The position numbers and the translations under genes are program-made. From Dimorphilus gyrociliatus (lineage: Eukaryota; Animalia; Annelida), in NCBI GenBank assembly GCA_904063045.1, contig CAJFCJ010000001.1, positions 62,001 to 126,000 on the forward strand: a stretch of DNA of 64,000 nucleotides. Direction: 5' to 3'. The notes beneath the pieces are model-generated. The model was given only the letters and a program-made list of their open reading frames with translations. It searched no databases and had not been told where the DNA came from. This document shows, piece after piece, positions 14,037 through 34,441 of the stretch (the stretch's first letter is position 1; each line of letters begins with the position of its first letter).

Positions 14037-17000
14037 ATGCTCCTTAAGTTATTCTGTTTACTTAACTTTGCTTCATTTGGGCAATGTTACGTTCATATTC
14101 CAGACTTTCCAACGGGAAAAGATTACGAATGGAGAGTGCGCGGGGATTTGAACATTATTATACTGTATCCGATTAGCTCTTTTTCATCGATTCCCTGCTC
14201 ACCACCCTTGAATCCAACACAAGTATTGGGTACAGAATTATTGACTAAAGTGTTAACAGATTTGAATTCAAATGAGAAAATTCTTCCCAATATATCACTT
14301 GGAGTTACTTATTACGATGATTGTGGAACGATTAATGGAGGATCAGCCAGAATTGTTCAAATTTATCAACAAGATTGTTTAGATGATTTTGAAAAGACTA
14401 ATAATATTATTGGAATTTTGGGTATATTTTCTTCAAATCAGGCATTATCTGTGGGAAGTTTATCTTCCCAATTAAAAATTCCAGTACTATCAACTTACGC
14501 TACAGCCGAAGGATTGTCAAATAAAGCTATATACGAGTATTTTACTCGGCTAGTCCCATCCGATAAATTTACCACCCAAGCAATGATGCACTTTTCGGAT
14601 TATCATAATTGGAGATATATTCAATTGGTGTTTACTGACGGCATTTTTGGAGAAAATGCTGCAAAAGGAATTCAAAAATTCGCAAAAATGAAGGGTATTT
14701 GCGTTGCAAATACTATGAGAGTCGATAGTTTCACTGATTTCAAAGCAACTGTAGACAAACTCATTAAGTATGAAAAAGCTAAAGTCATTGTAATGTTTAC
14801 ATATCCTGGCCACGGTAAAGAGATCATAAGATTATTAAACAAAACCAAATACTATGATCATTTTACATTTTTCGGCGCTGATTCCTATAGATTTTTGGAT
14901 GGATATGAAAAGATGCAATCTAAATCATTCTTATTCTTATACACACTTGGCGAAGATCCTAAATTTGTTGATCATGTATCATCATTAACTCCTTCAATGG
15001 CTGACCATATATGGATGAAAAAACTATGGGAACAATTGGGTGATTGTCATTTTGAAACAAATTGTTCTAAATACGCAAATTTTTACGAAACTAACAAAAT
15101 AACTGATAGTATCTTCAAATACATGTTCAAATTAGGAGATGGAATGGAAGCGTACGCCCGTGCATTGCATAATCTGATTTCAGATCAATGCCCTGAAGCA
15201 TTTAATAATAAAACACTACTAAAGGTAAAAAATATTTGAAATATAAAATATTTAATATCTGATTTATAATAAGAGAATTCAATAACATATTAATAGGATT
15301 GTACAAAGGGGCCAGATGTTTTAAAATATCTTCGGGAAGTGAAATTTAGGTCGAAAACTGGTATTAATTATTTCTTTGATGACAATGGTGACATGTTAGG
15401 CGACTATAATATATTCTACTACTCTCCAGTAGGAAATAAACTTGAACAAAAGTTAGCTGGAACGTGGTCAAAAAGAGGAGAGGTACTTTTGGCCTTAAAG
15501 CAGTTTCAAATTGAATCAATTTGCAGTAGACCGTGTCCCAAAAAGCATATTTATATTCCGCAAGATTTGGAGTGTTGTTGGCAATGCAAAAAATGCAGAG
15601 ATAATGAAATTGTTATAAAAAATAGAACCGAATGCAAGAAATGTCCTGAATTCTATTGGCCAGGTAAAAATACAAATTAAAACTATATATACTAATATAA
15701 GTCTCTAAAATTGTAGTTAGCGTATCGTATTTAAGATGAATTAGCCATACTGTCAATGATAGTTCTGTTCCTCTGACAAGTTTAATTCTTTTCATCAATG
15801 ATAGAATTTCCATAAATCTCGTTAATCGAACTGTTTTTTTCTAAATATTAGTACACTTTTAAGCAGAATGTTTCATTTACAGAAGAGAAAGACAAGATTC
15901 TTATTATAGAACTGTCGCTTTCTACTTGGTATTTTTCTATATTCGTGGTATTAATGAGTACAGTTTCTGATCGATACTGTACAGATATAATTTCATATTT
16001 GAATAATAATCATTTAATACAAGAAGGAGGTAACAAAATTCGCAATGATTTATAAATCAAGCACCAAATATAACTGTATATAAATAAGATATATTATAAG
16101 TGCATTTACAGTTAAAATACAACAAACTTTTATGTACAATATCCTTTTAATAGATATAGCACAAACATTTGTTGGATAATAATAACATATATTAATTATA
16201 TCTTTTACATAAGAATAAAAGAAAAGGACGTAGCAATTAAATAAGTTCTTCTTCTAATCTAGTCAAAAAAAGATATATACTAAATAATAAAGCAAATTTT
16301 CTTTTTGGTGTTTTCGTATTTCGTATATAACTTTGTCATTGTTTTTTCCACTTTAATCTAAGTATTTATTTAAATATCATGTAGAAGAAATAAAAAAATT
16401 TCTTTATTAATACAACTTCCGGTCTTTCTTCCTCTATTTTCATTCAATTTTTTTTAAATAAAGGAGAAATATACTCTCAACAATTTTTTAATGGTTTTAT
16501 GCCTTTTTTTATAATATTTTATTGGAAAAATTTCTTTTTATTATAACATTCATGTTTAAATATAGCTTTTTCTACCTTTAGACGCAGATGCTGCGAGTGT
16601 TTGCTTGGTAATAAAGAGTGAATATCCGAAATGGAGTGATACTTTGGTTGTTCTTTTACTGTTTATTGCGGTTGTTGGAGGCTCTTTAGCTAGTTTAATG
16701 GGCTTAGCATACAGGAAATATAGAAACAAGAAAATTATTAAAGCGTCCGCTCGCCATCTATCGGCTATAATACTTTTGGGGATCATTATATGTTTTACTA
16801 CAGTTATTTTTCTGTTGGCAAAGCCAAGGTTTTTGACCTGCTTATTCAGTCGTATCGGTTTAAATCTTGGAATAACATTCATTTATGTCCCTCTTCTTAT
16901 GAAGACTCAAAGAGTTTATAGAATTTTCAAAAGTGGATCAAAAGGAAAACAAAGACCAAGTTTCACTAGCAATAAATCTCTTATGATTATGACAGTTATT

Positions 17001-17489
17001 TTGATTGGATTTGAAGTTGTCTTGATTCTATTCAGCATACTTTTTTGGCAACCGACAGATAAACGAGTACAAAAAATTGAAATTGAGAAAAAAGTTGAAT
17101 TGACTTGCTACAGTCCTCCAATATCTTTGGCTATACCTCTCGGGTTCAATGTACTCATTCTATTATGTTGCGTGGGCTTGAGTTATCTAACTAGAAAATT
17201 ACCGGAGAACTTTAACGAATCCTGGTATATATTTGTGTCAGTTGCAACAACAATATTTCTATGGATAGTGCTATTGCCAGCATACTTTACTATGTTTTAT
17301 GTTTACTACAAAGTTATTATTCTTGGAATATGTCTCATAACTAATGGAATTCTTACTTTACTCTGCCTCTTCTTACCCAAAATTTATGCTATATTTTTTA
17401 TTGATGAGCAGGAAGTAGTCTATGCAAGCTATAGCCGCTACAACTCAACGAAAATTGCAACTGTATCAACTGGAGAAACAACTAGTTAA
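14037..17489 (+). CDS. Class C GPCR, mGluR-like (complete paralog 1)
   Basis: Exons 14037-15224, 15297-15663, 16582-17489 (phases 0,1), 820 aa. Signal peptide, Venus flytrap (RLVPSD, ENAAK), cysteine-rich domain (CSRPC...CCWQC..C...C..C) and 7TM (IIKAS, KTQRVYRIF, RKLPENFNES, PKIY). Confidence 0.92.
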
Positions 17490-18297: not shown

Positions 18298-20801
18298 ATG
18301 AGAAGACTAATATTTTTAATATTAGGACTGCCCTATGTTTTTTCCTTGTATAATCTAGCAAAATTCCCTGCTTCAAATAAGACAGATTTGAGAGGAGAAG
18401 GAGATTTAATTATTGCCCTTATGTATGAGACTCACATCGTTGGAAAAGTTCGCTGTGGTGGAAATTTAAACTACGATAGAGCAGTTACACCTGAGCTGAT
18501 GAGACTTCGAATTAAACACTATAATGATAACAATAATATTTTACCTAATATAACGTTAGGATACGTGTATTTAGATACATGCGGAGGGATTAACAGTTAT
18601 ACTTGGCGATCCATGGAACTCTTAAATGATCTAAATGGTGCAAGAACTACAAATGTTGTTGGAATTGTAGGACCATATTCTTCTGATCAATCAATATCTC
18701 TTGCTGGTATGACATCAGCATTAAATTTACCTACTTTGGGAATCTATTCAACGTCCGTTGAATTATCAAATAAGGGGAGATTTGAATATTTCTCGCGTCT
18801 TGTACCGTCCGATGCTTTCGCCACAGAAGCTATGGCTGAAGTTATGAAAACGCTTAAGTGGACGTATATTCAAATGTTATACATGGAAGGATCATTTGGT
18901 GAGAATGCCGCTAAAAATATCGAGAAAAATACAAAAAAATATGGGATATGCATTGGTAATAGCCAAAGATTTTCATTTGATTATTCCGATGATTATGATG
19001 AAATTGTCAAAAAAATAGTTAAGACTAAAAAAGCAAGAATCTTAGTTGCATTTCTCAGTCCCCAAATGAGAACATTATTGTTTAAAGCAATGGAGAGAAA
19101 TGCACCAAATGAAAGATTTATATTTGTAGCGGCTGATGCTTACGGTAGAGAACCTGGATATGAGCATCTGCAAGAGGGTAGTTTAATGTTTGTTTATAAT
19201 GGAGGTAAAGACGCTGTTTTTGAAGAATACTTCAATAATCTGAAACCTTCGGATCCTACTATATATTGGACAAGAAAAGTTTGGGAACATTATGGAAATT
19301 GTGATTTTGAAACCACTTGCCAAAAATACAATAAGATGTCCGATGTTAAACCAAATTTAAAATCTGCTCAAATTAAAGTTGCAGATGGTATAGATGCCTA
19401 TGCTTATGCTCTTCATGATTTGATAACGAATGAATGCCCTGACGCATTCAAAGATAAAAGTATTCTAAGCAATGGTTGTATAACTGGAGAAAGAGTTTTA
19501 AAATACCTGAGAAAGCAAAAATTCACTTCTCTAAGTGGTGTAAAGTACAGTTTTAATGACAGAGGTGACATGTTGGGTGATTATTTCATACAAAGATATA
19601 CTTGGAAGAATAAGCTATGGGAATACGATGTAGTTGGTAAATATTCTAAAGTCACAGAAGAGCTCAATATGTTTGAAAATCTGGAAATAGAGTCAATTTG
19701 TAGCAAACCATGTCCAAAGAAACATATTTATGTTCAACAAGATCTAAAGTGTTGCTGGCTTTGTAGAACTTGCCGGGAGAATGAGATCCTGGTTAACAAT
19801 AAAACAGAATGCCAGAAATGTCCAGAATTTCTATGGCCAGGTAAGAAAATGTCATTTTATGAGATAACTTATGAGTTTGACAATTAATGTGGTATAAAAT
19901 GATTTTAGACTCAGATGAAGCCTTGACCTGCCACGATATAGAAGATGAATACGTAAAATGGCAAGATCCGTTGGGTCTTCTTTTATTAATCCTGTCAATA
20001 ATAGGACTTATAGGCAATGTAGTTATTATTGTATTGTATACCATCTATAGGGAAGAAAAGATTATAAAGGCGTCGTCCCGACATTTCTCTGTAATGATCA
20101 TCTGCGGAAGTACAATAGGTTATATAAGTGTTTTATTGTTAGTTGCAAAACCAGAGCTGGCGACATGTCTACTAAATAGAATTGGGTTTCACCTTGGTGC
20201 AACATTCATTTATGCGCCCCTGTTCATGAAAACTCAACGAGTATATAGAATTTTTAGGGCTGGATCAAGGGGTAAACAAAGACCCAGTCTTACCAGCAAT
20301 CGATCTTTAATGATTACCACTCTTATTATAATTGGCATACAAGCTGCCTTGGTCGTTGTCAGTTTAGTATTGTGGCCTCCTGCCTCGGAAAGAATACAAA
20401 GGATAGAAATTGAGAAACGAGTCGAATTGACTTGTTATAGTCCTCCAATTTCGTTAGCTATACCTGTAGGATTCAATGTACTTCTTTTGCTATGTTGCGT
20501 CACATTAGGATATCTAACTAGAAAATTACCGGAGAATTTCAATGAATCTTGGTATATATTTGTGTCAGTTGCAACAACAATATTTCTATGGATAGTATTG
20601 TTGCCAACGTACTTTACGATGTTTTATGTTTATTACAAGGTTATAATTCTTGGAATATGCCTCATAACTAATGGAATTCTTACGTTACTATGCCTATTTT
20701 TGCCTAAAATATATGCGATCTTTTTCGTTGACGATGAAAACATTGAAAGTAGTAAAGGATCCAAAATTGCTCCAAGTTCGGTTAACGAAACGACTAGTTA
20801 G
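18298..20801 (+). CDS. Class C GPCR, mGluR-like (complete paralog 2)
   Basis: Exons 18298-19840 and 19909-20801 (one 68-nt phase-1 intron, CCAG|GTAAGA...TTTTAG), 811 aa. Same domain set as paralog 1. Confidence 0.92.
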
Positions 20802-21765
20802 ATTTCTTCACAACTTTTAGTCCACAACTTTTAGTGTTTCTATATGTTATAGCACACATATTTCAAATGTTTGTCAGAGATGTTCAAAATAAAGAATTAT
20901 TACTTTCAATTACAATCCATGCTGTATTCTTTATACCACTTATTTATATGTTATTAATTCAATAAATAGGGTACAAACTAATTAAGAAATATTATTAGTG
21001 TTTTGTATTGCATTGGTATGTATTTAATATTATAAAAGGGGACTTAGTTTGTATTAGTTTGCTTTATGTTTTACTTGATGTAAACGAATTTTTGATACCT
21101 ATCTGATATTTTAAGATTCTTTAATCATTTTTCTTTCGAAATATGAGACTTTTAGACATATTTACCGGTAAGATGTAAAGATATTTTGTACCTATTGGCT
21201 CTCTAACAAAATTAATATGTATGCTACTTGCTTGCTTCTTATAATTTTAGTTAGATTCTGTTAATAAAATAAGAATAATTTATAATATTTTTAAGTAAAT
21301 TGTATCTAACCTGAGTTAAGTTTGATATTATAATACTCCTTCGTTTTTAAGGTATGTCAGATGTTGAAAAAAATTAAAGGAATAACATTATTAAAGAATG
21401 ACCTAGATAATTTTTTGTTTTCTAGTTTTTCTAGATTTTTTAGTGTTATTAATCATTCTGTTATAATTAATAAGCTTTTTAGAGGTTATTGACAAGAAGG
21501 GTCTTTTCCTAGGATATTAAAACAATCTCTAATATTTATAAATTAATATATATAACAATTCTTACTTGGGTTTACCTTGTTAGTATTCAATTTTCTCCAA
21601 ATCATCTAAATTCTCTCTCCTTTACAAGGATTTCATCATTGATCACTCCCTATTGTGAAATTACAGAAAGCAAGATAAACTTTAATTATCATGTTTATTC
21701 ATTAGATACTTTATAAAGCTTACTATTTCATCTGTTTACCGATCATTGAGCTACATAAGCACCAA

Positions 21766-22010
21766 GAGAAAGCTCTGACCTGCCAAGATATACAGGATGA
21801 ATACGTAAAATAGCAAGATACAGAGAGTCTTCTTTCTATAATCCTCTCTAAGTTGCCTTAACTGCAAAACAGACTAAGTGTATTTTTCAAGAAAGAAAAA
21901 ATTATTGAAGCATTATTCTTAAATCTTCCCTATGTTTTATTATAACGCTCCACGGAAGTACAAAGACTATGTAAGTGCTGTACTATTAGCGTCCCAATAT
22001 CGACTACATG
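21766..22010 (+). pseudogene. Decayed copy of the start of the paralog-2 7TM exon
   Basis: EKALTCQDIQDEYVK*QD versus paralog 2 DEALTCHDIEDEYVKWQD (TGG to TAG at 21811-21813). Degraded EKII and CGST-like stretches with indels follow. Confidence 0.75.
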
Positions 22011-23003
22011 GAAAGGAATTTTACCAGATATGATGTTCAGTATTGTCACGTCTGTAGGAATTGAAAAGTTTTAGAAGATGAGTATTCTGTTCTCCTAAAG
22101 CTTCTCATTCCAGATTCTTTGCCCAAGTCTGCACATAAAATTTATCTAAAATATTATACTTTTTGTAAATTCAAGTTAACTTCCACTGCATTTGTCTTAA
22201 CAGATTTAGTAATAATTGTATAGTCTTTTATATATTTTTCTACAACACCTTCTTTGAAAAACTTATACCATAAGGTTTTAACACACTCTTTCCATTGATT
22301 TGCAAACTTGTTGAATATAATATGTGTTAGATTGAAGTTCTCGATTTTCAATTAGCTAAAATTCTATATATAGAATGCATAATCAGATTAAAAGAATAAG
22401 AATCCTTTCATTGAGAATAGAAGTGATCTAAGAATTGAATAGTTGTTAATCAAACTGAACCCCATTCGAAACAGGTCTTTTTTCTACATTTTACATTTCA
22501 GTTTCCAACTTTTTTACTGTTGTAACTTTGGTAAGGTAATGAATAGATATTGAATATCACGTAAAAGATGACATTTTTTAGTTTTAGTGTTTTTAAGTAC
22601 TTCTTTTTATAGTTTTCGTTTTTTTGAAAAGCTAATAAGAGACAACGCCCAGTTTATCTTATAATACACTTTCAAAAATTCTAGTTTTCACTTTCCTAAT
22701 TGCCGATAGTGTGTGCTAAAGAAATCTAAGAATAACATACACTGACAAAAAGTCAGAAATATAATAATTCACTTAGTAGGTATAAAAAATCATTTTAGGC
22801 TGGAAGTTTGGGCCATACTATTCGAAATTTCCTCTGCTGTAGTTGAAAGAGAAGAACAATCGGATATAAGGCTTGTGATTTCTTTGGAGTAGCTAGTTAA
22901 TGCAAAATGAAGGTTCTTTTATATAAAAAATGACTTTTTAAGAGAATTAGTAATCTTAACATTATGTTAATAATATTACATCTTTCAGTCGTAATGAAGA
23001 TAA

Positions 23004-24300
23004 ATGAGTATGAGTATCAAGAGCAAGTGTATCCTTCGTCTTTTATTTCTTACTGGATGCATCTGTCTAATTCCAATACCAAAATTTCCATATTCAGAAC
23101 AAATGGAAATGTCTGAATATGGAGATCTAAATATTGGAATACTTATAAATGTACATGGATCCAGCGATAAAGGACTATGTTCAAAAACACCTTCGATTTG
23201 GTCTCTACTGGCTCCTCTTCAAATCCAATATACAATTGGAAAGATAAATGCCGATATAAAAATTTTACCTAACTTGACACTTGGCTTCAAAGTTGTTGAC
23301 ACTTGCGATCAATTAAATGGAGCGGTCTCGCGTCTTATTGAATTTCTTCCTCAAGCATGTCCTCAAATAAGGTGAGTGAACTTTCGCTAAATAACGTGAT
23401 TTATTACAACAAGTAGTGTAGTAACTTGCAATACCTATGAAAAACTTTTATTACCACAGAGAAGATGAGAACTATGTAGGTTTGCTTGGACCAGGTTCAT
23501 CTTCGTCAGCTGTTCCAGCTGCTGCTCTAGGATCTCAATACGAGTTGCCCTTGTTGTCAACTTATGCAACGTCTGAAGAATTGTCAAATAAGGTACGATT
23601 CAAATATTTCTCTCGTCTTGTTCCTCCTGATTCTGTTGTGGCGGAAGCAATATCGCAATTGTTAGAAGATTCTAAATGGTCTTTCATACAATTACTGTAT
23701 TCTGAAGGTTCGTATGGTGAAAATGCAGCTAAGAGTATTGAAAAAAATACGAAAGCAAAGGGTATTTGTATTGGTTTTAAGTATAGATTTAGTTCAGATA
23801 TGACAGATGACTACAGTTATATAGCCCGAAAAGTTCTTGAAAATAGAAAGGCCAAGGTAATAGTACTAATTGCATTTGGATCACATGTTCGAAAGTTTAT
23901 ATCCGCTTTAAGCAAAAGTAAACGGCCAGAAAGGTTTATCTTTATTGCATCGGATTCGTTTTCTCCAATTAGTGGATACGAAGATCAATTTCAAGGAAGC
24001 ATACAATTTTATTTTAAATATGGGCTGGATCCTGTATTTCATAACTATGTAAATTCTTTAAAACCATCTGATGCTAATCACTATTGGATAGAAAAACTAT
24101 GGGAATTAACTGGAAATTGCAACTTTACAACAACTTGTCAAAATATCTCAAAATTCTCGGAAGTGGGGAGTGCATTTTCATTAACAAATTACGTCATAAC
24201 CGCAAAATACGGAGATGGGTTAGAGGTTTATGCCAAAGCACTACATGATCTTGTTATCTCTAAATGTCCTCTGGCTTTTCAACATAAAAGCATATTGAAG
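23004..24300 (+). CDS. Class C GPCR Venus-flytrap cassette A (signal peptide plus VFT, no own CRD/7TM)
   Basis: Exons 23004-23371 and 23460-24300 (phase-2 intron), open frame throughout. Ends ...HKSILK|GTTATC at the phase-0 position where paralog 1 splices. Confidence 0.85.
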
Positions 24301-26129
24301 GTTATCGATCAATTTTAAATTTTATAAGTATATAGTATGACGCATGTATTAGTATATAAATTTTCTTAGTATAAGTAGCACGAGATAAACAAAAAAAGAG
24401 CTTTTAGAGAAGTAGTTAATCGCCATGAAAAAAAAGAAAGCTATGAATAATCATTTTTTTTAATTACATCTTGTATGATGTAAAAATTAAACGCAATAAC
24501 ATCTCTTTGTTGAACTTTCGCTTGAGTTTATTGAAGAAATAACAAAGCTGCATGACTACTGTGTATATATTTTCTGTGCTAACTTTAAAAGACATTCGAT
24601 ATTCATTAAATGGCTTAAAAAGGTTGAATCTAAAATTTCCTTTGTACATATGAGTACCCGGCCTTTGACAATCATATTCTTCATTCGCTTATTACTAATT
24701 AGAAAGTCTTGATTAAATTATGTTGGGAAAAAGAGTTAATTAATTGGTCAAATTAAGTATGTGTCTCATTATAAACATATGTAGTATATATTTAGTACAA
24801 TGAAAAAATAAAAATTTTCATATATTTTATAATATGTCATCTTCTAAGTTTATTCAGCAAAAGATAACTAATCCTTTTGAAATTAAATCGCTCTTAGGCA
24901 CTCTAGATGGCGTATAACAATAGCTTAGATAAATTGTATGTATGTACAGCATATATAGATACATTAGGTTCATACTTTTTTTCAAAGAGTAAGCGCTACT
25001 ATTGAAGAGGGCAGTCTATATATAGCTTCTATAAAGTTTTTAAAATAACCATTTAATGAATGAATAAATTAAAACGTTTAATTACTTACGATGAATAAAA
25101 TATAAACGTAATATAGAAAAAACAACTATACACACATATACATACACACGCAAACATAAACAAAAAATAGAAGATGTATATGCTAATGAGCTAAAGATAA
25201 TTGGTACTTATTGAGAGTTTACAAAATTTTTTGAAAGAGCCAAAAGTAGAAAGTTGTCATGTAAAATGTAATATTTCTATTGCTGATTTGGTGTGCCTTA
25301 GGCCTATGAGATACATATAATAGATATGAACTAACAAATCGCTTGCTGAGAGTGGAATGATAAATCATTTTCTGAGGGAAAAAAATTAATCAAGTAAGAA
25401 GGTAATCCAATAAGACACGTAATTTTTTCTATTCGATTGGTAAACTTCCTTTGCCGTACATTAGAGCGAGAAAGGAAAAGAGAAAGATAACAGACAAAGA
25501 GAAGATAAGAAATCTATTAAAGAGAACAAAATATCACAGAGATTGAATACATATGAAAGTACAAAGCAAGAAACGTTGATTTCTAATAGAAAAAGAAAAA
25601 ACGATTTATTTCCAAAGAAAATAAAGGACAAAGTACATTGCATATATATACTGTATGTGCGTATTTTTTTACCCACACCTCCCTTCTATCTTTAGATGTA
25701 TTCTCTTCGTGGTTCTCTTATTTATATTTAAAGGATATCGAGTCTTAGCTCTCAGTCATTTTCCTTTTAACTTATGTTATTTTACTGAGGTAATGATAAA
25801 TCTATACTATTAAGCGCTGCTCTAATAAATAAAAGAACTAAAAATTAAAATAAGTGCTAAATGGTAATTACAAATGGCAGTGCAAATACAAAACATCATT
25901 AGAAGAAATAAAAAAAGCTGATCTGTACATCTCGTTTGTTAAAAGGGAAACATGAAATGTCCAATTCAAAAACAGTTTCTTACACTAAATTTTCAAAGAT
26001 AAATAGTGAAAAATAAACACAAAAAACTTTATCAACTCCAAGCTATAAGTTCCAAAATTGTTGTTAATTTATGCTAAGCAATAGCACTACATATACTGAC
26101 TCTCATCGTTCATTAGATAGTTGTAAGCA

Positions 26130-28047
26130 ATGCACCAACTAACATACCTATTGTTAGTTATTATTAACTTCCATCATACTGGCTCTGAAATCGTGATACC
26201 AGATTTTCCGAATGGACCAGAATTTGAATGGCGAGAAGAAGGAGATCTCAATATTGGTATTATCACTTCAGCTCACTCAACAACTTCAAGAGGGCCATGT
26301 ACAGGTATGATAAGTACTTCCAGCGTATTAATCGGAAAGAGAACACAGTATATTTTAAATAAAATTAATAATGATCCATATTTCTTGCCAAATATTACTC
26401 TGGGGTTTATATTCCTCGACGCGTGTGGTACAACAAACGGTCCCGTTTCCAGAGTTGTTCAATTACTTCCATTGTCTTGTTCAGTGCCAAGGTAAAAAAT
26501 ATTTCACAATGAGCGAATTATTTAATTATAAACAATTGTAAAATGTTTCGTTTATTTTTTTTGAAAAGAATACCTAAAAAGTAAAAAAAGCAACAAATAA
26601 TCAAAGTGAATACCTTTTGATATATTTTGATATCCTTTAAACAACGGTTTATAAGTACATCAATTCTATAAATATGCAATATATATATATTAGTATGTGT
26701 GCATGTACGAACGAATGTGTTTATAACTACAGTATATACATATGCACAAGTATATATTACAGTTACTTACATCTATATATTCCTATATAAATGTATGTAT
26801 CATATTTCGGACATGCATACTAAACTGTATGTAAACACTATTGAGTAAGGAAAGTTATACTATTGTATAGATTAAGTAGTCTTTTTCTGTGCATACAATA
26901 CCTTAGAAGTTAGAGTAGGTACACTTAATAAGCAGAGTAAATCCATAAACTGTATGAGTTTTATTTTAAATGAAAGGGATCACGTAGATAGAAGCAAAAC
27001 AAACTTTGTGTTGTTCTTCCTAAAATAATTTTCGTGTAAATTAGATGCGAAAGAAATTGCTACCACCTTTTAAACGATTTAGATAAAAAAAACAAAAAGA
27101 AGAATATTCCTTTCATCTTCAAATAAGGAAAGAAACGTACATTTTAATGAAAATGAGAGTTGTCAGTTCTTGAATATTTTTTACCTATCACTTTAAGTAA
27201 AAATTCTTTTATCGTCGGTCTTGTTGGACCTGGATCTAGTTCACAAGCCGTCCCAGCTGCGGGTATGGTATCTCAGTTTAAGCTACCGTTGCTATCAACT
27301 TTTGCAACTTCTGAAGAACTTTCCGATAAGTCACGATTTCAATATTTTTCACGACTGGTTCCTCCCGACTCTATTGCAACTGAAGCCATGACGCAGCTTA
27401 TGATAGAGTTTGAGTGGAGCTATATTCAGTTACTATACGCTGAAGGATCATATGGAGAAAATGCTGCTAAAGGGGTAGAGAAGAATGCGAAGAAAAGAGG
27501 TATATGTATAGGATATAGCTATAGGCTTAATGCTGACGATTCAAACGACTATGAAGCCATTGCTAAAAAGCTTATTGAGCACAAGAAAGCTAGAGTTATA
27601 GCTATGATAGCAGGCAGTTACTATATGAGAAACATTCTTACAGCTATAGAAAAAATATCTAAAGGTGAGCAGTTTATATTTATGGTCGTCGACTCATTCG
27701 GCAGAATATCGAACTATGAACATCGCCAAAATGGAACTTTACAAATAATCTATGATGGTGGCATTGATCATGATTTTGCCAATTACATGTACTCTCTTAA
27801 ACCTCAACAAGCTAAACATCATTGGGAGAAACAATTGTGGGAAAAATTAGGGAGATGTAATTATACACTTGACGCTACTGATCCAACTTCTTGTTTAAAA
27901 CATTCAAATTTTTCTAATACAACGCTCTACCCATATTCTAGTTCGGCAGTGAAATATTCAGATGGTGTAGAAGTATACGCAAAAGCAATTAAGGATTTAA
28001 TAGAATCCTCCTGTCCTGACGCCTTCAACAATAAATCACTTTTAAAG
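26130..28047 (+). CDS. Class C GPCR Venus-flytrap cassette B (signal peptide plus VFT, no own CRD/7TM)
   Basis: Exons 26130-26491 and 27198-28047 (phase-2 intron at the same position as in A), open frame. Ends ...NKSLLK|GTTATC, phase 0. Confidence 0.85.
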
Positions 28048-29486
28048 GTTATCGATCAGTTTTTTTAACAAACAATAACTAACAAAATTTTCTCCTTACT
28101 TAAGAAAAAGTCATTATTTTACTTTTTTAATATCCTTAGAACATTAAAGGTAATTGTGCACCTATATTTGAGTACTGTGGTGTTACACTTACGTGATGGT
28201 CTTTTGGCTAAAAGTTAAGGCCTACTCTTTGACGTTATTATAGCAATATATTGGAGCTTTTTTTCTTTATACTCTGTTAACTATTTCCTTTCCTGCTTGA
28301 TGCAAATTAAAAAAGATAAAAGAGAAAAAATAGATCGCTGTGTCACTTTTTTTCTAAAGAGTACAAACTAAAAAAAGAAATGATAAAAGTCAGATGAATA
28401 TGAAAAATTGGCTTATCAAAGGATATTTTATTTACTAAAATTGTAAAGTAAAAGAATCTTTAAATGAAATTATAAATTTAACTTTCCGTTTAAAAATGAA
28501 TTAAAGGAGATTTTTCTTTCTTGATGTTAATACTTAAGCGCATTACGTAAAATTCTTTAATTTTCTTTTTTGGTACTAAAATAACAACAGGCTATAATTA
28601 CTACTAATACTATGACTAAGACTAACATTATCTCTTTTAATTATTAGGATTTAATTATCACTAAGTCGATCTTAAATCACTCATTTTAATTGAATTTTAA
28701 TATTATAAATACACAAATTATGTAAGATATGAGTTAATGGAAAATCATAAAGGGATATTAAAAATCTGTGGCCTAATTCATAGAAATCTCTTATTTTATA
28801 CATTTGATATATAAAATATATGTTTAAATTATGTATATCACATTCGATAGATGGCGCAACAGTTTTTACAATATCACTGAAATAACATTTCCATTACAGC
28901 TAGTGATGAAAAGACCGCAAAAATGGCGTTTTCTACTAATTAAATTCCTAATAAAACTGTTTGTAGTATAGATACTCTTAGTCTTATTCTTTCTACTTTT
29001 CCTGGCCATTAGTTGGGTTGGAACAGAGGGAAAGAATTTATATAGAAAATCTGACGTTTTCCGAAGACGAGTACCAATGCCTTTTACTTTTTAATAATAG
29101 ATATAAAACTGAGCAAAATGTTGATAACACGTACTTACGGCTTAATATTTAACTGAGGAAGGCATTATATATACAGTGTATATACTAATACGTATATATA
29201 CAGTATATATATACAGTATATAAATATTAGTATATCTGCTGTATATGCTGTATACAATGAAAATAACAAATGAAGCCTCTTTTCGTAATAATGAAATTAA
29301 GATGAAATTTTGAAATAGATACGTGATTGTACGTTTTCTAAGTTAGGATATTTTATAATGTGTGACATCTTATTAAGATATCAACTGCTATAAAAAGTAC
29401 TTTTGCATCCTGTCATGTGATACACTATTCATTTGAAATCGCTATTTACTATAATGAAATGCACAACCTTTATATAAAATAAATTT

Positions 29487-30749
29487 ATGTGCATGCGCGA
29501 TCATTTATTTGTCATTAGCAGCAAGAAAATTTTGCAACTAATGTCTCATAAAGAGATGATAGTGATTTTCCTAGCAAATTTCATCATTTTTGTCAAGAGT
29601 TATCCACTTATCCCAGGTTTTGTTGGGAATGAGTGGGAAGTAGACGGAGAAGTGAAAATCGGAGTACTTTATTCAGTTCATTCCGATCATTCTTCAGGAA
29701 ATGAAGCATTATCTTGTCAAGGTAAAGTAAGTCCTTCCGGTGTTCTTGCGGCCGAACTAGCAGAGTTAAGAATAAAGAATATCAATAAGGATCCAAATTT
29801 CTTGCCAAATGTCACATTGGGATTACTTTACCTCGATACTTGTGGAGGAGTCAACGGAGCCGTAGCCAGATTAAATCATTTTATGTCGGATAAATGTCCA
29901 ACTAGAACAACCGAAAAAAAAGTTGTGGGAATAGTAGGACCATTTTCTTCTGCTCAATCTATTCCGGCAGCAGCTTTAGCATCTCAATTTAAAATTCCTC
30001 TTCTGGCTACATTTGCAACATCGGATGAATTATCAGATAAAGCTCGCTTTGAATATTTTTCTCGTCTTGCACCACCAGATTCGTTCATAACTCAAGCAAT
30101 GGTAAGCGTTATGGTTCGTTTCAAGTGGAGTTACATTCAACTTCTCTACTCGGAAGGCTCTTACGGAGAAATTGCTGCCAAGAGCATTGAGAAAATCGCC
30201 AGAGCAAATGGTATTTGTATCGGAAATTCTGTTCGATTAAGTTCTGATTATTCTGAAAATTATATAACAATTGCCGAGAAGATTTTGGAGAATAGAAATG
30301 CGAAAGTAGTCGTCCTTATAATGTCTCATAAATTTAGAGAAGATCTCTTTACAGCATTATATCAAGTTGGAAGCAAAAAAAGTGATTTTATCTTTTTTTC
30401 TGCCGACTCATACAGGCGATTTCCAGGATTTGAACAAATTCAACATGGAACTTTGCATTTCTTTTATAAAGTTGGTAGAGATACAAGCTTTGAAGATTTA
30501 ATAAAAACTAAACAACGATCAGAATCTGATCATGCATGGATAAAATCTTTGTGGGAAGAAGCAGGCAAATGTAATTTCTCTACCACTTGTTCGAAGTATA
30601 AGTCATTGGGAGATATTAATAGTCTTACTAGCAGAGACTTCAAATTTTCTCTCAAGGTTGGAGATGGTGTCGAGGTATACGCAAGAGCTTTGCATAGTCT
30701 CATCTCGGAGAACTGCCCCGAAGCCTTTCTGAACAAGAGTCTATCAAAG
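29487..30749 (+). CDS. Class C GPCR Venus-flytrap cassette C
   Basis: Single open exon ending ...NKSLSK|GTTGTT, phase 0. The start may be ATG 29541, which gives a better signal peptide. Confidence 0.85.
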
Positions 30750-31327
30750 GTTGTTAATCATATTTTTTGGACAAGTTTCGATCTGGTTTAATTTGTTAAA
30801 AGCTATTTAGCAGAGTTCAAAAAAGGAAAACAAAAAGTAAACCAGAATCAAGAGGGGGATTTAATCAGCAAATGCTATTTTACTTAAAAGAGTGAAATTT
30901 CTTAAATATCATAAGACAGTCGTATAAAACCTAAGGAATTCAATGTTTTTGTTTTTTTGTATTTTAAGAGTGGCAGCTTAATCGAAAACTGGTGCATTTG
31001 CCTATTTAGTTTATATTTAAATTATTAAAAAGATCAAAGAAATGGCTATCAGCAGAGGTGAAAAGGAAAAATTTTCTTTATTTAGTATCAAGGGCTCTTA
31101 AATAGATTGTATTTATAATCGCATAAGAAAAATTTGTACTCTTAATGTTACAATATCATTTATTAAATGATATTTAAAGATAATTGGTGCAAATTCTCCT
31201 ATGCGCAAGGTAATATCCGTCTATTTCAGTATCGAATTGTATGAGTCTTGTATTCTTATAATTCTTTATGGAAATTTATAAGATGTAGATTGTTTTTCTA
31301 AAATGTAAGTATATAGAAGTATGCTCT

Positions 31328-31349
31328 AAATTGATCGATTACCTTTAAA
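31328..31349 (+). promoter_or_regulatory. Putative RNA docking site immediately upstream of the shared acceptor
   Basis: AAATTGATCGATTACCTTTAAA is reverse-complementary to the exon/intron junctions of cassettes A (24295-24315), B (28041-28062) and more weakly C (30746-30760). Confidence 0.7.
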
Positions 31350-31352
31350 TAG

Positions 31353-33235
31353 GACTGTGTAACTGGAGAATCGGTATTAAAGTATCTTAGACAGCAAGAG
31401 TTTAAAGCTACATCCGGCGTTCAATATAAATTCGATGTTAAAGGCGATATGCTTGGAGAATATACAATATTTCAATATACTTGGGAAAATGCAACTTGGA
31501 ATCAAAGAATTGTTGGTGAATGGAAAAAAGATGGTGAAATTTTACAAATGGATAAGAATCTTAGTTACATAGAGTCAATTTGTAGTAAACCATGCCCACC
31601 AAAACATATATATCTACAACAAGAGTTGGCTTGTTGTTGGTTATGTAAGAAATGTAGAGAAAACGAAATCTTATCCGAAAACAAGACTGAATGCGAAACT
31701 TGCCCCAAATTTTTTTGGCCAGGGATGTCACCAATGAATTTTCTATAAATATGAAATTTCATCAATTATCAGTATATGAAACTTAAAGAAATTTAAGAAA
31801 GGACAAAAATATCTTTTGTCAAGAGTAAATGTAGAGTTGGAAAGTAAAAACTGGAAAGTAAAAATATCTAAAATTTCAGCTTGAGTACTCTTTTCATTAC
31901 TTGTCTTCTTCGGTCAATGACATTATTAGTATATTAACATGTTTTATATACTTCCTCTCAAAATATTAGATATGTTTAAAAGTGAGAAAGATTCAGGACG
32001 TCTCTTTAAATCCCTTTTTAATTATCTAATTATTTACTTTGACAAAATTTAATATAATTGCATTATTCTGGTTTAAAAATATCAATATTATGAAAAGTTT
32101 TAAGAGGGTCTTTAATTTTAAAAAATACCTTTTTTCAGAAGGGTAAAAATTCTTCTAAAACTATGAAGGTTAAGAAAGTTTAATGGTATTAATTATAATG
32201 TATATCTTTTAAAAGATTCAGAGTACTGTCATTATTCTCTTCAAACAGATAATTAATATTTAAAAACAAACTACAAACTATTAATAAGATAAGATGTAAG
32301 TCTTTCAACAAACATTTATAAGTGACATCCCTCTGCCAGATTCTGAAACTGCTACAAGATGCTTGGCAATTGAAGTTGAATATGTTAAATGGAAAGATCC
32401 TTTGGCTATATTATTATTACTTCTTGCATGCTTCGGATTTATTCTTAATATCATCATAATAGCCATCTATAAATTATATAGTCACGAGAAAATAATTAAG
32501 GCCTCGTCTAGACACCTATCAGCTACTATCTTAGTTGGCAGTACTCTTGGCTATATTACTGTATTACTTTTTATCAGTAAACCATCTTTTACAATCTGCC
32601 TAATTAATCGGATTGGATTTCACATGACAGTATGCATTATTTATGCACCTCTGCTACTGAAAACACAAAGGGTATACAGAATTTTCAAGGCTGGATCAAA
32701 GGGTAAACAGCGACCAAAATTTGTAAGCAATCAAGCTCAATTATCGGCTACTTTATGCATTGTTTTAATCGAATTAATTCTCGTCATTGTAAGTTTGATA
32801 TTGTGGAAACCCGGATCGGAAAGAATTCAAAGAGTAGAAATCGAAAAACAAGTTGAACTGACTTGTACCAATCCTTTACCGGCGTTAATTTTACCTTTGT
32901 CGTTTAATATCCTTTTGCTGTTACTATGCGGTATTTATGGTTATTTGTCAAGAAAATTACCCGAAAATTTTAACGAATCCTGGTATATCTTTGTTTCCGT
33001 GGCAACGACCATATTTCTGTGGATAGTCTTTTTACCCACATATTTTACCATGTTTTATGTGTATTATAAAGTTATCATTTTGGCAATATGCTTAATTATC
33101 AACGCAACTTTAACCCTACTTTGTTTGTTTATACCCAAGATTTACGCCCTATTCTTTATCTCTGAAGAAGATTTAGTATTCGGAACGATGACTAAAAGCG
33201 AAGTAACCAAAGTTGGACCATCAAGTATAAGCTAA
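31353..33235 (+). CDS. Shared (constant) end-of-VFT, cysteine-rich and 7TM exons of the cassette GPCR
   Basis: Exon 31353-31722 (DCVTGESVLKYLRQQ...GDMLGEY...CSKPC...CCWLC...FWP) and exon 32340-33235 (DSETATRC...KWKDP...RKLPENFNES...PKIY). The donor at the homologous position reads GGATGT rather than GT. Confidence 0.85.
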
Positions 33236-34441
33236 GAAAAGCCCTGATAAAATCCTTTCCTGAACAGCACCTAATTTTAAAATTAGGCACCAAAATTCAG
33301 CTCACACTGGTTTTCACAACTGTATATTTAAAGCTATAAAAATCTAGATTGACAAGGAAGGTTTGATAATATAAATAAATATATGCTCATACCTAGACAC
33401 ACAGCTGCACAAACTCTAATCAATGTAAGACAATATATATATATAAATATATATTTCTATAATTCCAATAGGAGTATATATGTTGTATCTACAGTATCTC
33501 TGTATCAGATATTGGCACCTAGTATGCACTGGGTAACAAAAATATGATTACAATTGTTGTAAATTCCTGGTCAAGAAAACCGGAATTGAAATTGTATGAT
33601 TGTTGATATAAAATAAAAGTATATATTCCAGATATTGTTCATTTCAACTTTTTTTCCACTTATTATCGCATATTACGACCATCTATTATTAGTATTCACT
33701 TGTAACTATCTCTCCCTGTCATTATACATATACTGAATACAGTAAATCTATATATATACTGTATATATGTATTTCATAAACGATTAGCTTAGGCTATTAT
33801 AATAAAAGATGACTTACCGAGTTATCTTTAACTGTTTCTTGTTATTATATTCGGAATATTAAATAAGCATTTTCAAAATAGAAATTTTATATATAGAAAT
33901 GTAATGAGGCTTAAAAACTAATGAATGAATGTCTGCGTTACTATGTCACTACTTTATTATAACACATCACAGAAAAGTTTTAAGATGATAGGATAGTGAA
34001 CAGAAGAAAGATTAAATGAAACTTCTTACATTTACATGATTTTAACTAAAATATCATTGTTTTCTTACGCCTTTTTGTTTTTGGAAAGCAGGGGTAACGA
34101 TAATGATATTGGCTTTTGAAAAACTTGTTATGGACTCTTTTTTACCTTTTAGAAAATAGCTAGGGATAGAAAGTACTATCAATTATGAACAACAGAACAA
34201 ACGCTCTTCCCTATTCTCTTTTTCTTATGAAGTATGGTAACTTATAGAATTAAGAACATTGGAAAGCTATAAGGGAATTTAGGTTTAGAAAAGGTATTCG
34301 ATATGTAAAACGTTTCCATCAAGAAGTGTATTATAACTCATAAAAGGAGAAAAGACTTGTATTTTAATGAAAAATATATGCAAGATGCCTATCATTTTAT
34401 GCTAATATATCTCTCTCTCAATACTTCCGCATAATTGATTT

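Follow-up and report, generated by a model that had tools for sequence, protein, structure and literature searches.

A variable/constant arrangement of flytrap cassettes in a probable multi-receptor class C GPCR locus of Dimorphilus gyrociliatus

We analyzed a locus at positions 23004-33235 of a 64 kb stretch of DNA (the window, i.e., the whole stretch at its full length) from the miniature annelid Dimorphilus gyrociliatus; the sequence is animal DNA, rich in AT. One mGluR-like G protein-coupled receptor (GPCR) gene of class C appears there as a putative variable/constant locus, in which three tandem 5' cassettes, named A, B and C, precede a single constant set of exons. We consider it very likely that this locus yields at least two receptors, and probably three, on one constant body. 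The original prediction, an earlier reading of this DNA, had proposed several receptors built on a common signalling module; its observations hold with minor corrections, and the proposal is supported by RNA joining cassette B to the constant exons, by purifying selection and by synteny in a related species (see below). The exons and their expected junction sequences are the following:

23004..23371, plus strand: cassette A exon 1, an open reading frame (ORF) with start codon, signal peptide and N-terminal flytrap, and a GTGAGT donor at 23371, phase 2.
23460..24300, plus strand: cassette A exon 2, Pfam ANF_receptor E 7e-33, phase-0 donor at its end.
26130..26491, plus strand: cassette B exon 1, an ORF with start codon, signal peptide and N-terminal flytrap, and a GTAAAA donor, phase 2.
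27198..28047, plus strand: cassette B exon 2, ANF_receptor E 7e-37, phase-0 donor at its end.
29541..30749, plus strand: cassette C, one exon with start at 29541 or 29556, signal peptide and flytrap, ANF_receptor E 4e-47, phase-0 donor.
31353..31722, plus strand: constant exon 1, the last ~73 amino acids of the flytrap plus NCD3G (residues 74-123, E 2e-12 in 31353-31721).
32340..33235, plus strand: constant exon 2, seven-transmembrane (7TM) region (7tm_3), short tail and stop codon.
End of cassette A before the junction: ATATTGAAG.
End of cassette B before the junction: CTTTTAAAG.
End of cassette C before the junction: CTATCAAAG.
Start of constant exon 1, expected to follow the donors at 24300 and 28047 in spliced RNA: GACTGTGTAACTGG.

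Each cassette presented a start codon, a hydrophobic N-terminus or signal peptide and about 400 amino acids of an mGluR-type Venus flytrap. The cassette layout given at first had to be corrected: A carries an intron of 88 nucleotides (nt) (23372-23459, phase 2, GTGAGT…AG) and B one of 706 nt (26492-27197, phase 2) at a position homologous to that of A, and C alone is single-exon. The start of C, earlier placed at 29487, is probably 29541 or 29556; the ATG at 29487 meets a stop after 13 codons in the related species R (see below), where it behaves as 5' untranslated region or upstream ORF, which it probably is here as well. The final donors of the three cassettes were indeed common in kind, all in phase 0 after a homologous Lys codon (A, TTGAAG/GT at 24300; B, TTAAAG/GT at 28047; C, TCAAAG/GT at 30749). 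The cassettes had also been described as full-length and stop-free; their open frames and signal peptides stand, but the flytraps are incomplete, reaching only position ~300-314 of the 353 in ANF_receptor. The last ~70 amino acids of the domain are supplied by the beginning of constant exon 1, and therefore a cassette translated alone would give a truncated domain.

The common acceptor lies at 31353. When each cassette was spliced in silico to the constant exons, the frames of the A, B and C forms remained open for 824, 825 and 824 amino acids, respectively, with no internal stops. The domain order was that of a class C GPCR, i.e., flytrap (ANF_receptor), cysteine-rich linker (NCD3G) and then 7tm_3, whose match in 32342-33232 covered profile positions 2-251 of 251 (E 6e-57). 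The 7TM exon starts at 32340 and not at 32363 as first predicted, RNA contigs joining the constant exons exactly there. Among solved proteins, a full-length paralogue from the window aligned end to end with mGlu5 structures, mGlu5 being the nearest (E 9e-106), with mGlu7 and mGlu4 also among the closest. The mGluR1 motifs GPGSS, ATS, VPxD and EGxYGE, which Kunishima et al. 2000 reportedly described as gripping the alpha-amino-acid group, were found in A, B and C alike.

The constant intron (31723-32339) opens with GG, not GT, at a place where the paralogues and species R have TGGCCAG/GT; run X2, which contains RNA (see below), nonetheless excises exactly 31723-32339. The ends of this intron (31722-31731 and 32322-32331) are complementary, GGGATGTCAC and GTGACATCCC, and within 13 kb the best duplex partner of its donor was its own intron end (-30.2 versus -25.7 kcal/mol). 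This end pairing is not present in species R (-5.1).

A tblastn inventory of all the receptor pieces in the 64 kb showed five flytrap cassettes, three copies of the cysteine-rich domain (CRD) and three of the 7TM region. Two neighbouring genes are complete receptors, paralogue 1 at 14037-17489 and paralogue 2 at 18298-20801, and after cassettes A, B and C there is a single CRD exon and a single 7TM exon. This agrees with the earlier claim that A to C share one such set while both paralogues own theirs. As had also been claimed for the gaps after A and B, no CRD or 7TM remnants were found by tblastn in 24301-26129, 28048-29486 or 30750-31352, even at E<1, which rules out such exons hidden in the gaps.

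The same layout was found in species R, a relative of D. gyrociliatus represented by the independently assembled Logan contigs L001, L003 and L009. L009 carries A' in two exons (the exon 1 orthologue at 480-841) and then 1.5 kb without CRD or 7TM; L001 and L003 carry B' exon 2, C', the constant CRD, the constant 7TM and then the same downstream kinase gene in the minus strand. The order of A', B', C' and the constant exons is that of D. gyrociliatus. These contigs bear on the possibility of an assembly artefact, by which CRD and 7TM exons belonging to A and B would have been collapsed or lost. The similarity of the paralogues in the 7TM region (56-65% of amino acids) makes a collapse conceivable, and the window contains no Ns to flag a gap; but the contigs of species R run from B' through C' to the constant exons unbroken and without additional CRD or 7TM copies, the 1.5 kb after A' are free of both, and run X2 has 88% of the sampled words of 23004-28068. 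An assembly gap, which the original prediction had named as a way for it to fail, is ruled out by these independent contigs, and the artefact as a whole is extremely improbable.

In a tree of the cassettes, (A,A'), (B,B') and (C,C') paired with 99-100% support; since the orthologues group together, the triplication is older than the split of the two species. Nonsynonymous (dN) and synonymous (dS) divergence was as follows, in NG86 values, YN00 being unusable for most pairs (saturated data):

Cassette A exon 2 versus species R: 67% amino acid identity, dN 0.21, dS 1.93, dN/dS 0.11.
Cassette B exon 2 versus species R: 69% amino acid identity, dN 0.22, dS 2.38, dN/dS 0.09.
Cassette C versus species R: 67% amino acid identity, dN 0.22, dS 2.37, dN/dS 0.09.
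Constant part versus species R: 89% amino acid identity (constant exon 1, 87%; constant exon 2, 90%), dN 0.065, dS 1.88, dN/dS 0.03.

The ratios of A and B, proposed earlier as a check on neutral evolution, are not neutral, and by this measure both cassettes are under the same purifying selection as C. In the alignment, 33 columns were conserved within orthologue pairs and different between cassettes, which fits maintained differences in specificity; A, B and C may present different ligand pockets. One could still regard A and B as decaying leftovers of partial duplication, with only C and the constant exons making up a gene. C is the nearest cassette and gives a conventional gene model, and a 7TM-like relic at 21763-21912 shows decay within the cluster. 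Nevertheless, both species have kept the frames, the signal peptides and the splice sites intact, the dN/dS of 0.09-0.11 equals that of C at dS near 2, and B is joined to the constant part in RNA. Pseudogene relics being ruled out by the intact frames and a dN/dS near 0.1, this explanation is left with a negligible probability.

Only two public runs contained the locus, X1 (RNA) and X2 (RNA-containing). In X1, a 158-nt contig matches 31351-31418 and continues for 83 letters upstream, the last 30 of which match uniquely 28016-28045, at the end of cassette B. This contig is the B-to-constant junction, with donor 28047 joined to 31353, so that a junction other than C-to-constant, the check put forward with the original prediction, is present in RNA. 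In X2, constant exon 1 is spliced to constant exon 2 at depth 151, with no coverage over that intron. Three X2 contigs meet at the acceptor: one of 2134 nt (29247-31380, depth 22) spans C and the unspliced intron, the constant-exon contig begins at 31351 (depth 151), and a lone contig of 31 letters (depth 110) has 31351-31380 preceded by one non-genomic letter. Because every cassette ends in AAG, this 31-mer is shared by all spliced forms, and a contig of only one k-mer indicates a branch of the graph at the adjoining upstream letter, position -4 from the junction, which is G in A and A in B and C. The contig topology thus suggests that an A-to-constant junction coexists in X2 with at least one of the B-to-constant and C-to-constant junctions, and that most constant-exon RNA in this run is unattached to C. 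A protein search with the constant CRD exon, aimed at junction-spanning ORFs, brought up nothing but the genomic ORF of species R, in a protein collection that seems to lack the Logan contigs of D. gyrociliatus.

The A and B introns both open with GTTATCGATCA, and a near-perfect reverse complement of this sequence lies just before the common acceptor. By analogy with mite sDscam (see below), we propose that a docking/selector arrangement is present, composed of these elements:

24295..24315, plus strand: selector A, RNA arm across the A donor with core GGTTATCGATCA; -23.9 kcal/mol with the docking site.
28041..28062, plus strand: selector B, RNA arm across the B donor; -24.7 to -25.3 kcal/mol with the docking site.
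30745..30765, plus strand: degenerate selector at the C donor, GGTTGTTAATCA; -11 kcal/mol, in the background range.
31328..31349, plus strand: docking site, 4-25 nt upstream of the common acceptor and complementary to the selectors.

The predicted duplex is 20-22 bp long with one U-U mismatch, and takes in the last exon bases and the donor GU. Folding of the docking 28-mer against every 30-mer of the 10.3 kb upstream gave -24.7 kcal/mol at B and -23.9 at A, the next best being -17.0 over a background with mean -5.1 and standard deviation 2.8 kcal/mol; in the reverse scan (13 kb) the docking site was the best partner of both the A and the B donor. When at most one mismatch was allowed, both strands of the 64 kb had the motif at three places only, the docking site and the donors of A and B. 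The sequence GGTTATCGATCA itself marks the donors of A and B in D. gyrociliatus and those of A', B' and C' in species R, with no further copy in the 64 kb or, paralogues included, in the R loci. The R loci, two paralogous genes among them, carry neither the selector nor the docking motif at any other place. The 20-nt docking block (31328-31347) is identical in species R and is the sole conserved block of an otherwise non-aligning intron. A block of 18 nt at the B donor, GTTATCGATCAGTTTTTT (28048-28065), is also identical, and overall the selectors hold 11-18 nt identical between species with dS of about 2 whose remaining introns are unalignable. Duplex energies in species R were -22.2 (A'), -28.5 (B') and -19.8 kcal/mol (C'); all three of its donors carry the canonical selector, C' included, the one at C in D. 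gyrociliatus having drifted. When metagenome contigs were searched with the 20-nt docking block, three chance matches came up, none of them near a class C GPCR, which left no third species in which to look for covariation. Note that the A and B donors, GUUAUC, match the usual GURAGU poorly, other introns of the locus starting with GTGAGT, GTAAAA or GTAAGA, and that the preservation of such weak donors fits a pairing constraint. The docking arm (…GAUUACCUUU…) resembles the 5' end of the U1 small nuclear RNA. We regard it as fairly likely that the conserved duplex directs the distant donors.

The sequence past the A and B donors could instead be coding. A and B would then be separate secreted, flytrap-only genes with a read-through tail (…K-VIDQF-stop), and splicing of B to the constant exons would be occasional noise. 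The annotation indeed has A as a 375-amino acid protein ending in the intron, the tail residues Val-Ile-Asp are identical in A, B, A', B' and C', run X2 covers regions past the donors, and purifying selection is compatible with secreted proteins too. However, the cassettes lack the last ~70 residues of the flytrap, which are present in the constant exon, the conserved docking sequence at the constant acceptor would be left without a role, and the B-to-constant junction exists in RNA. In addition, despite saturated dS, the five sequences agree at all three synonymous third positions in the codons of the tail, which points to constraint at the nucleotide rather than the protein level. Taken together, we find secreted products improbable as an alternative to receptors sharing the constant exons.

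A candidate core promoter was found upstream of cassette C:

29445..29465, plus strand: TATA-like block of 21 nt, with the first ATG in the C region ~40 nt downstream.

The block recurs unchanged in species R, at the same offset and amid sequence that otherwise fails to align. A conserved inverted repeat, ATGCACA … TGTGCAT, comes next and takes in the ATG at 29487; block and repeat together lie in 29445-29500 (L001 3257-3312). Conserved sequence was also present upstream of the ATG of A. D. gyrociliatus has neither operons nor spliced-leader trans-splicing (PMC7854359), and this absence, together with the TATA-like block before C, suggests that the cassettes are probably transcribed from separate promoters.

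The isoforms may also be real while the conserved motifs serve another purpose: the ATCGAT-containing sequences could bind a protein or act at the DNA level (for example as DRE/Cut-like sites or a splicing-factor site), not by RNA-RNA pairing, or the cassettes could be spliced in a mutually exclusive manner from one promoter. The lack of covariation, both arms being invariant, would agree with a protein site, as would the palindromic ATCGAT core, by which the same protein site would occur in both arms, and the presumed functioning of C in D. gyrociliatus despite its degenerate selector. On the other hand, the complementarity extends far past the palindrome, to 20-22 bp including the last bases of the exon, the two arms are placed precisely at the donor and just upstream of the acceptor, and two other long introns of the locus show end-to-end pairing through unrelated sequences; a single promoter is at odds with the conserved TATA-like block directly before C. 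This alternative seems doubtful to us, although it keeps some weight.

End pairing was also seen in B intron 1 (706 nt), where the donor-spanning arm AGGTAAAAAATATT (26490-26505) is complementary to 27172-27185, located 13-26 nt before the acceptor (-18.2 kcal/mol, the second best of 13 kb). The sequence AATATTTTTTAC was also found ~30 nt before B' exon 2 in species R, and the short introns of the locus are without such pairing. RNA bridges of this kind may more generally assist the splicing of long introns, which are rare in this compact genome.

The proposed mechanism is as follows. A transcript begun at A would run through B and C as well, B exon 2 and its acceptor among them, and the frame would be lost if the phase-0 donor of A were joined to the phase-2 B exon 2. 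By pairing between the A selector and the one docking site, the A donor (7.05-kb intron) would come to lie beside the constant acceptor with the intervening sequence looped out, and B (3.3-kb intron) would do likewise over C. Since the selectors would compete for one docking site, one cassette would be joined per transcript and the internal exons of downstream cassettes would be looped out. The locus would then produce three receptors of ~824 amino acids with different ligand-binding lobes and an identical signalling part.

Several observations weigh against this reading. Junction-spanning RNA amounts to one contig (B-to-constant, depth 3.8), from a run labelled invertebrate metagenome; the A-to-constant junction comes from contig topology, not from a read, and no spliced C-to-constant contig was seen among the contigs of X1 and X2. 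In X2, the C exon and the 603-nt intron following it lie in one unspliced contig (depth 22), and of the words sampled from stretches taking in the gaps this run contains 82-88% (88% for 23004-28068), so that read-through or retained-intron RNA, or DNA, must be present in the library. At the level of the duplex, the C selector is degenerate in D. gyrociliatus, where cassette C lies only 603 nt from the acceptor, and both arms are invariant between the two species, leaving no covariation. Lastly, the selector overlaps the 5' splice site as well as the read-through codons Val-Ile-Asp, and other constraints could therefore contribute to its conservation.

Other conserved elements were located between the cassettes. 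After cassette A there is an isolated block of 14 nt, ACTCTAGATGGCGT (24900-24913; L009 2662-2675), conserved in both species. A stem-loop of ~57 nt (28146-28203; L001 ~1790-1850) lies in a conserved block ~100-155 nt past the B donor; 22 nt plus 14 nt of it are identical between species, it shows one compensatory base-pair change and has no Rfam match, and it may represent a small RNA of the intron or a structure that regulates splicing. The B-C gap holds an AT-rich palindromic repeat (TATATACAGTATATA units, 29166-29235), also present in the same gap of species R (L001 2008-2057 and 2286-2347). A search of 21000-34000 against Rfam gave nothing credible, with only sub-threshold miRNA-like matches on AT-rich palindromes.

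Upstream of the locus, the ORF 18298-20798 corresponded to DgyrCDS17 with 100% identity in a protein search. Between paralogue 2 and cassette A, a fragment resembling transmembrane segment 1 (TM1) at 21763-21912, 46% identical to the TM1 region of paralogue 2 (E 1e-7), is probably the leftover of a lost paralogue or exon. The model DgyrCDS16 of paralogue 1 ends after the CRD, yet a 7TM exon is present at 16605-17489, and DgyrCDS18 (23103-24315), annotated as a protein of 375 amino acids ending within the intron, is cassette A alone extended into that intron. The public gene models of 14037-17489 and 23103-24315 thus look incomplete. This is an annotation error worth flagging, as the public models split the locus and similar loci in other invertebrate genomes may be hidden likewise.

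Class C receptors act as dimers, and three heads on one body could, if the proposed reading is true, give six homo- and heterodimer combinations from one gene. Receptor repertoires are usually thought to expand via duplication of whole genes; in this locus only the ligand-binding head would have been duplicated, with the module for 7TM signalling and G-protein coupling reused. It would also be a natural experiment in which different flytraps drive one 7TM and heterodimers differ in their heads only. Likewise, if true, docking/selector RNA pairing would gain a further phylum and a further gene family, in a genome that is very small and easily manipulated in silico. We lean slightly towards regarding it as the first GPCR locus that swaps whole flytrap modules on one 7TM, with the choice enforced by a duplex in which a weak 5' splice site is the selector.

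The original prediction knew of no such design for a class C GPCR, and a full-text literature search, which was not exhaustive, likewise found no published precedent for a class C GPCR, flytrap or mGluR with a variable/constant arrangement or alternative first exons; the D. gyrociliatus genome paper gives GPCR counts only. The closest proteins, mGlu1-8, share the domain order of flytrap, cysteine-rich domain and 7tm_3. Known mGluR splice variants alter the C-terminal tail, and GABA-B1a and GABA-B1b differ in N-terminal sushi domains via alternative promoters; we found no case of the flytrap itself being swapped.

In clustered protocadherins and UGT1A, variable first exons encode the recognition part and are joined to shared effector exons (PMC1885805). 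The worm locus has this variable/constant layout, with three ATG-bearing cassettes, presumably under their own promoters, and one constant set, repeated in species R. The units of those loci differ in being single exons without an internal 3' splice site, chosen by promoter only (PMC1885805), whereas two cassettes of the worm carry an internal intron and a putative RNA pairing system is present. The Drosophila chemoreceptor loci Gr39a and Gr28b also join large alternative 5' exons, as diverged as duplicated genes, onto few small shared 3' exons (PMC2204066). Their products are unrelated seven-pass proteins whose variable part holds most of the transmembrane helices, with no separate extracellular ligand domain, and a docking/selector system is not reported for them (PMC2204066). 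In yeast and Drosophila, complementary segments close to the 5' splice site and close to the branch point or 3' splice site shorten the effective intron (PMC2536676, PMC2724269), as would occur here; those yeast 'zipper' and Drosophila introns are constitutive or simple alternative ones, while in the worm one 3' arm would serve several competing 5' arms.

The nearest likeness is to sDscam-beta of the mite Tetranychus urticae, where docking/selector pairing with 5' variable cassettes and alternative promoters was shown experimentally (PMC9258826). There too, tandem multi-exon 5' cassettes with their own starts are joined to constant exons, and one docking site in the intron before the constant exon faces a complementary selector just after every cassette, so that the pairings compete (PMC9258826). 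The worm locus likewise presents, in the manner of the competing RNA pairings of Dscam1 exon 6, 14-3-3 xi and sDscam, one docking sequence complementary to selectors at the donors (weakly so at C, -11 kcal/mol), with both arms conserved in diverged introns; trans-splicing is not indicated in it. The sDscam-beta product is an immunoglobulin-domain adhesion molecule of an arthropod, encoded with dozens of cassettes, in contrast to the three cassettes of an annelid class C GPCR. The locus is a case of known genomic and RNA logic in a receptor class and a phylum for which we found no report of it, with the selector placed on the splice site itself.

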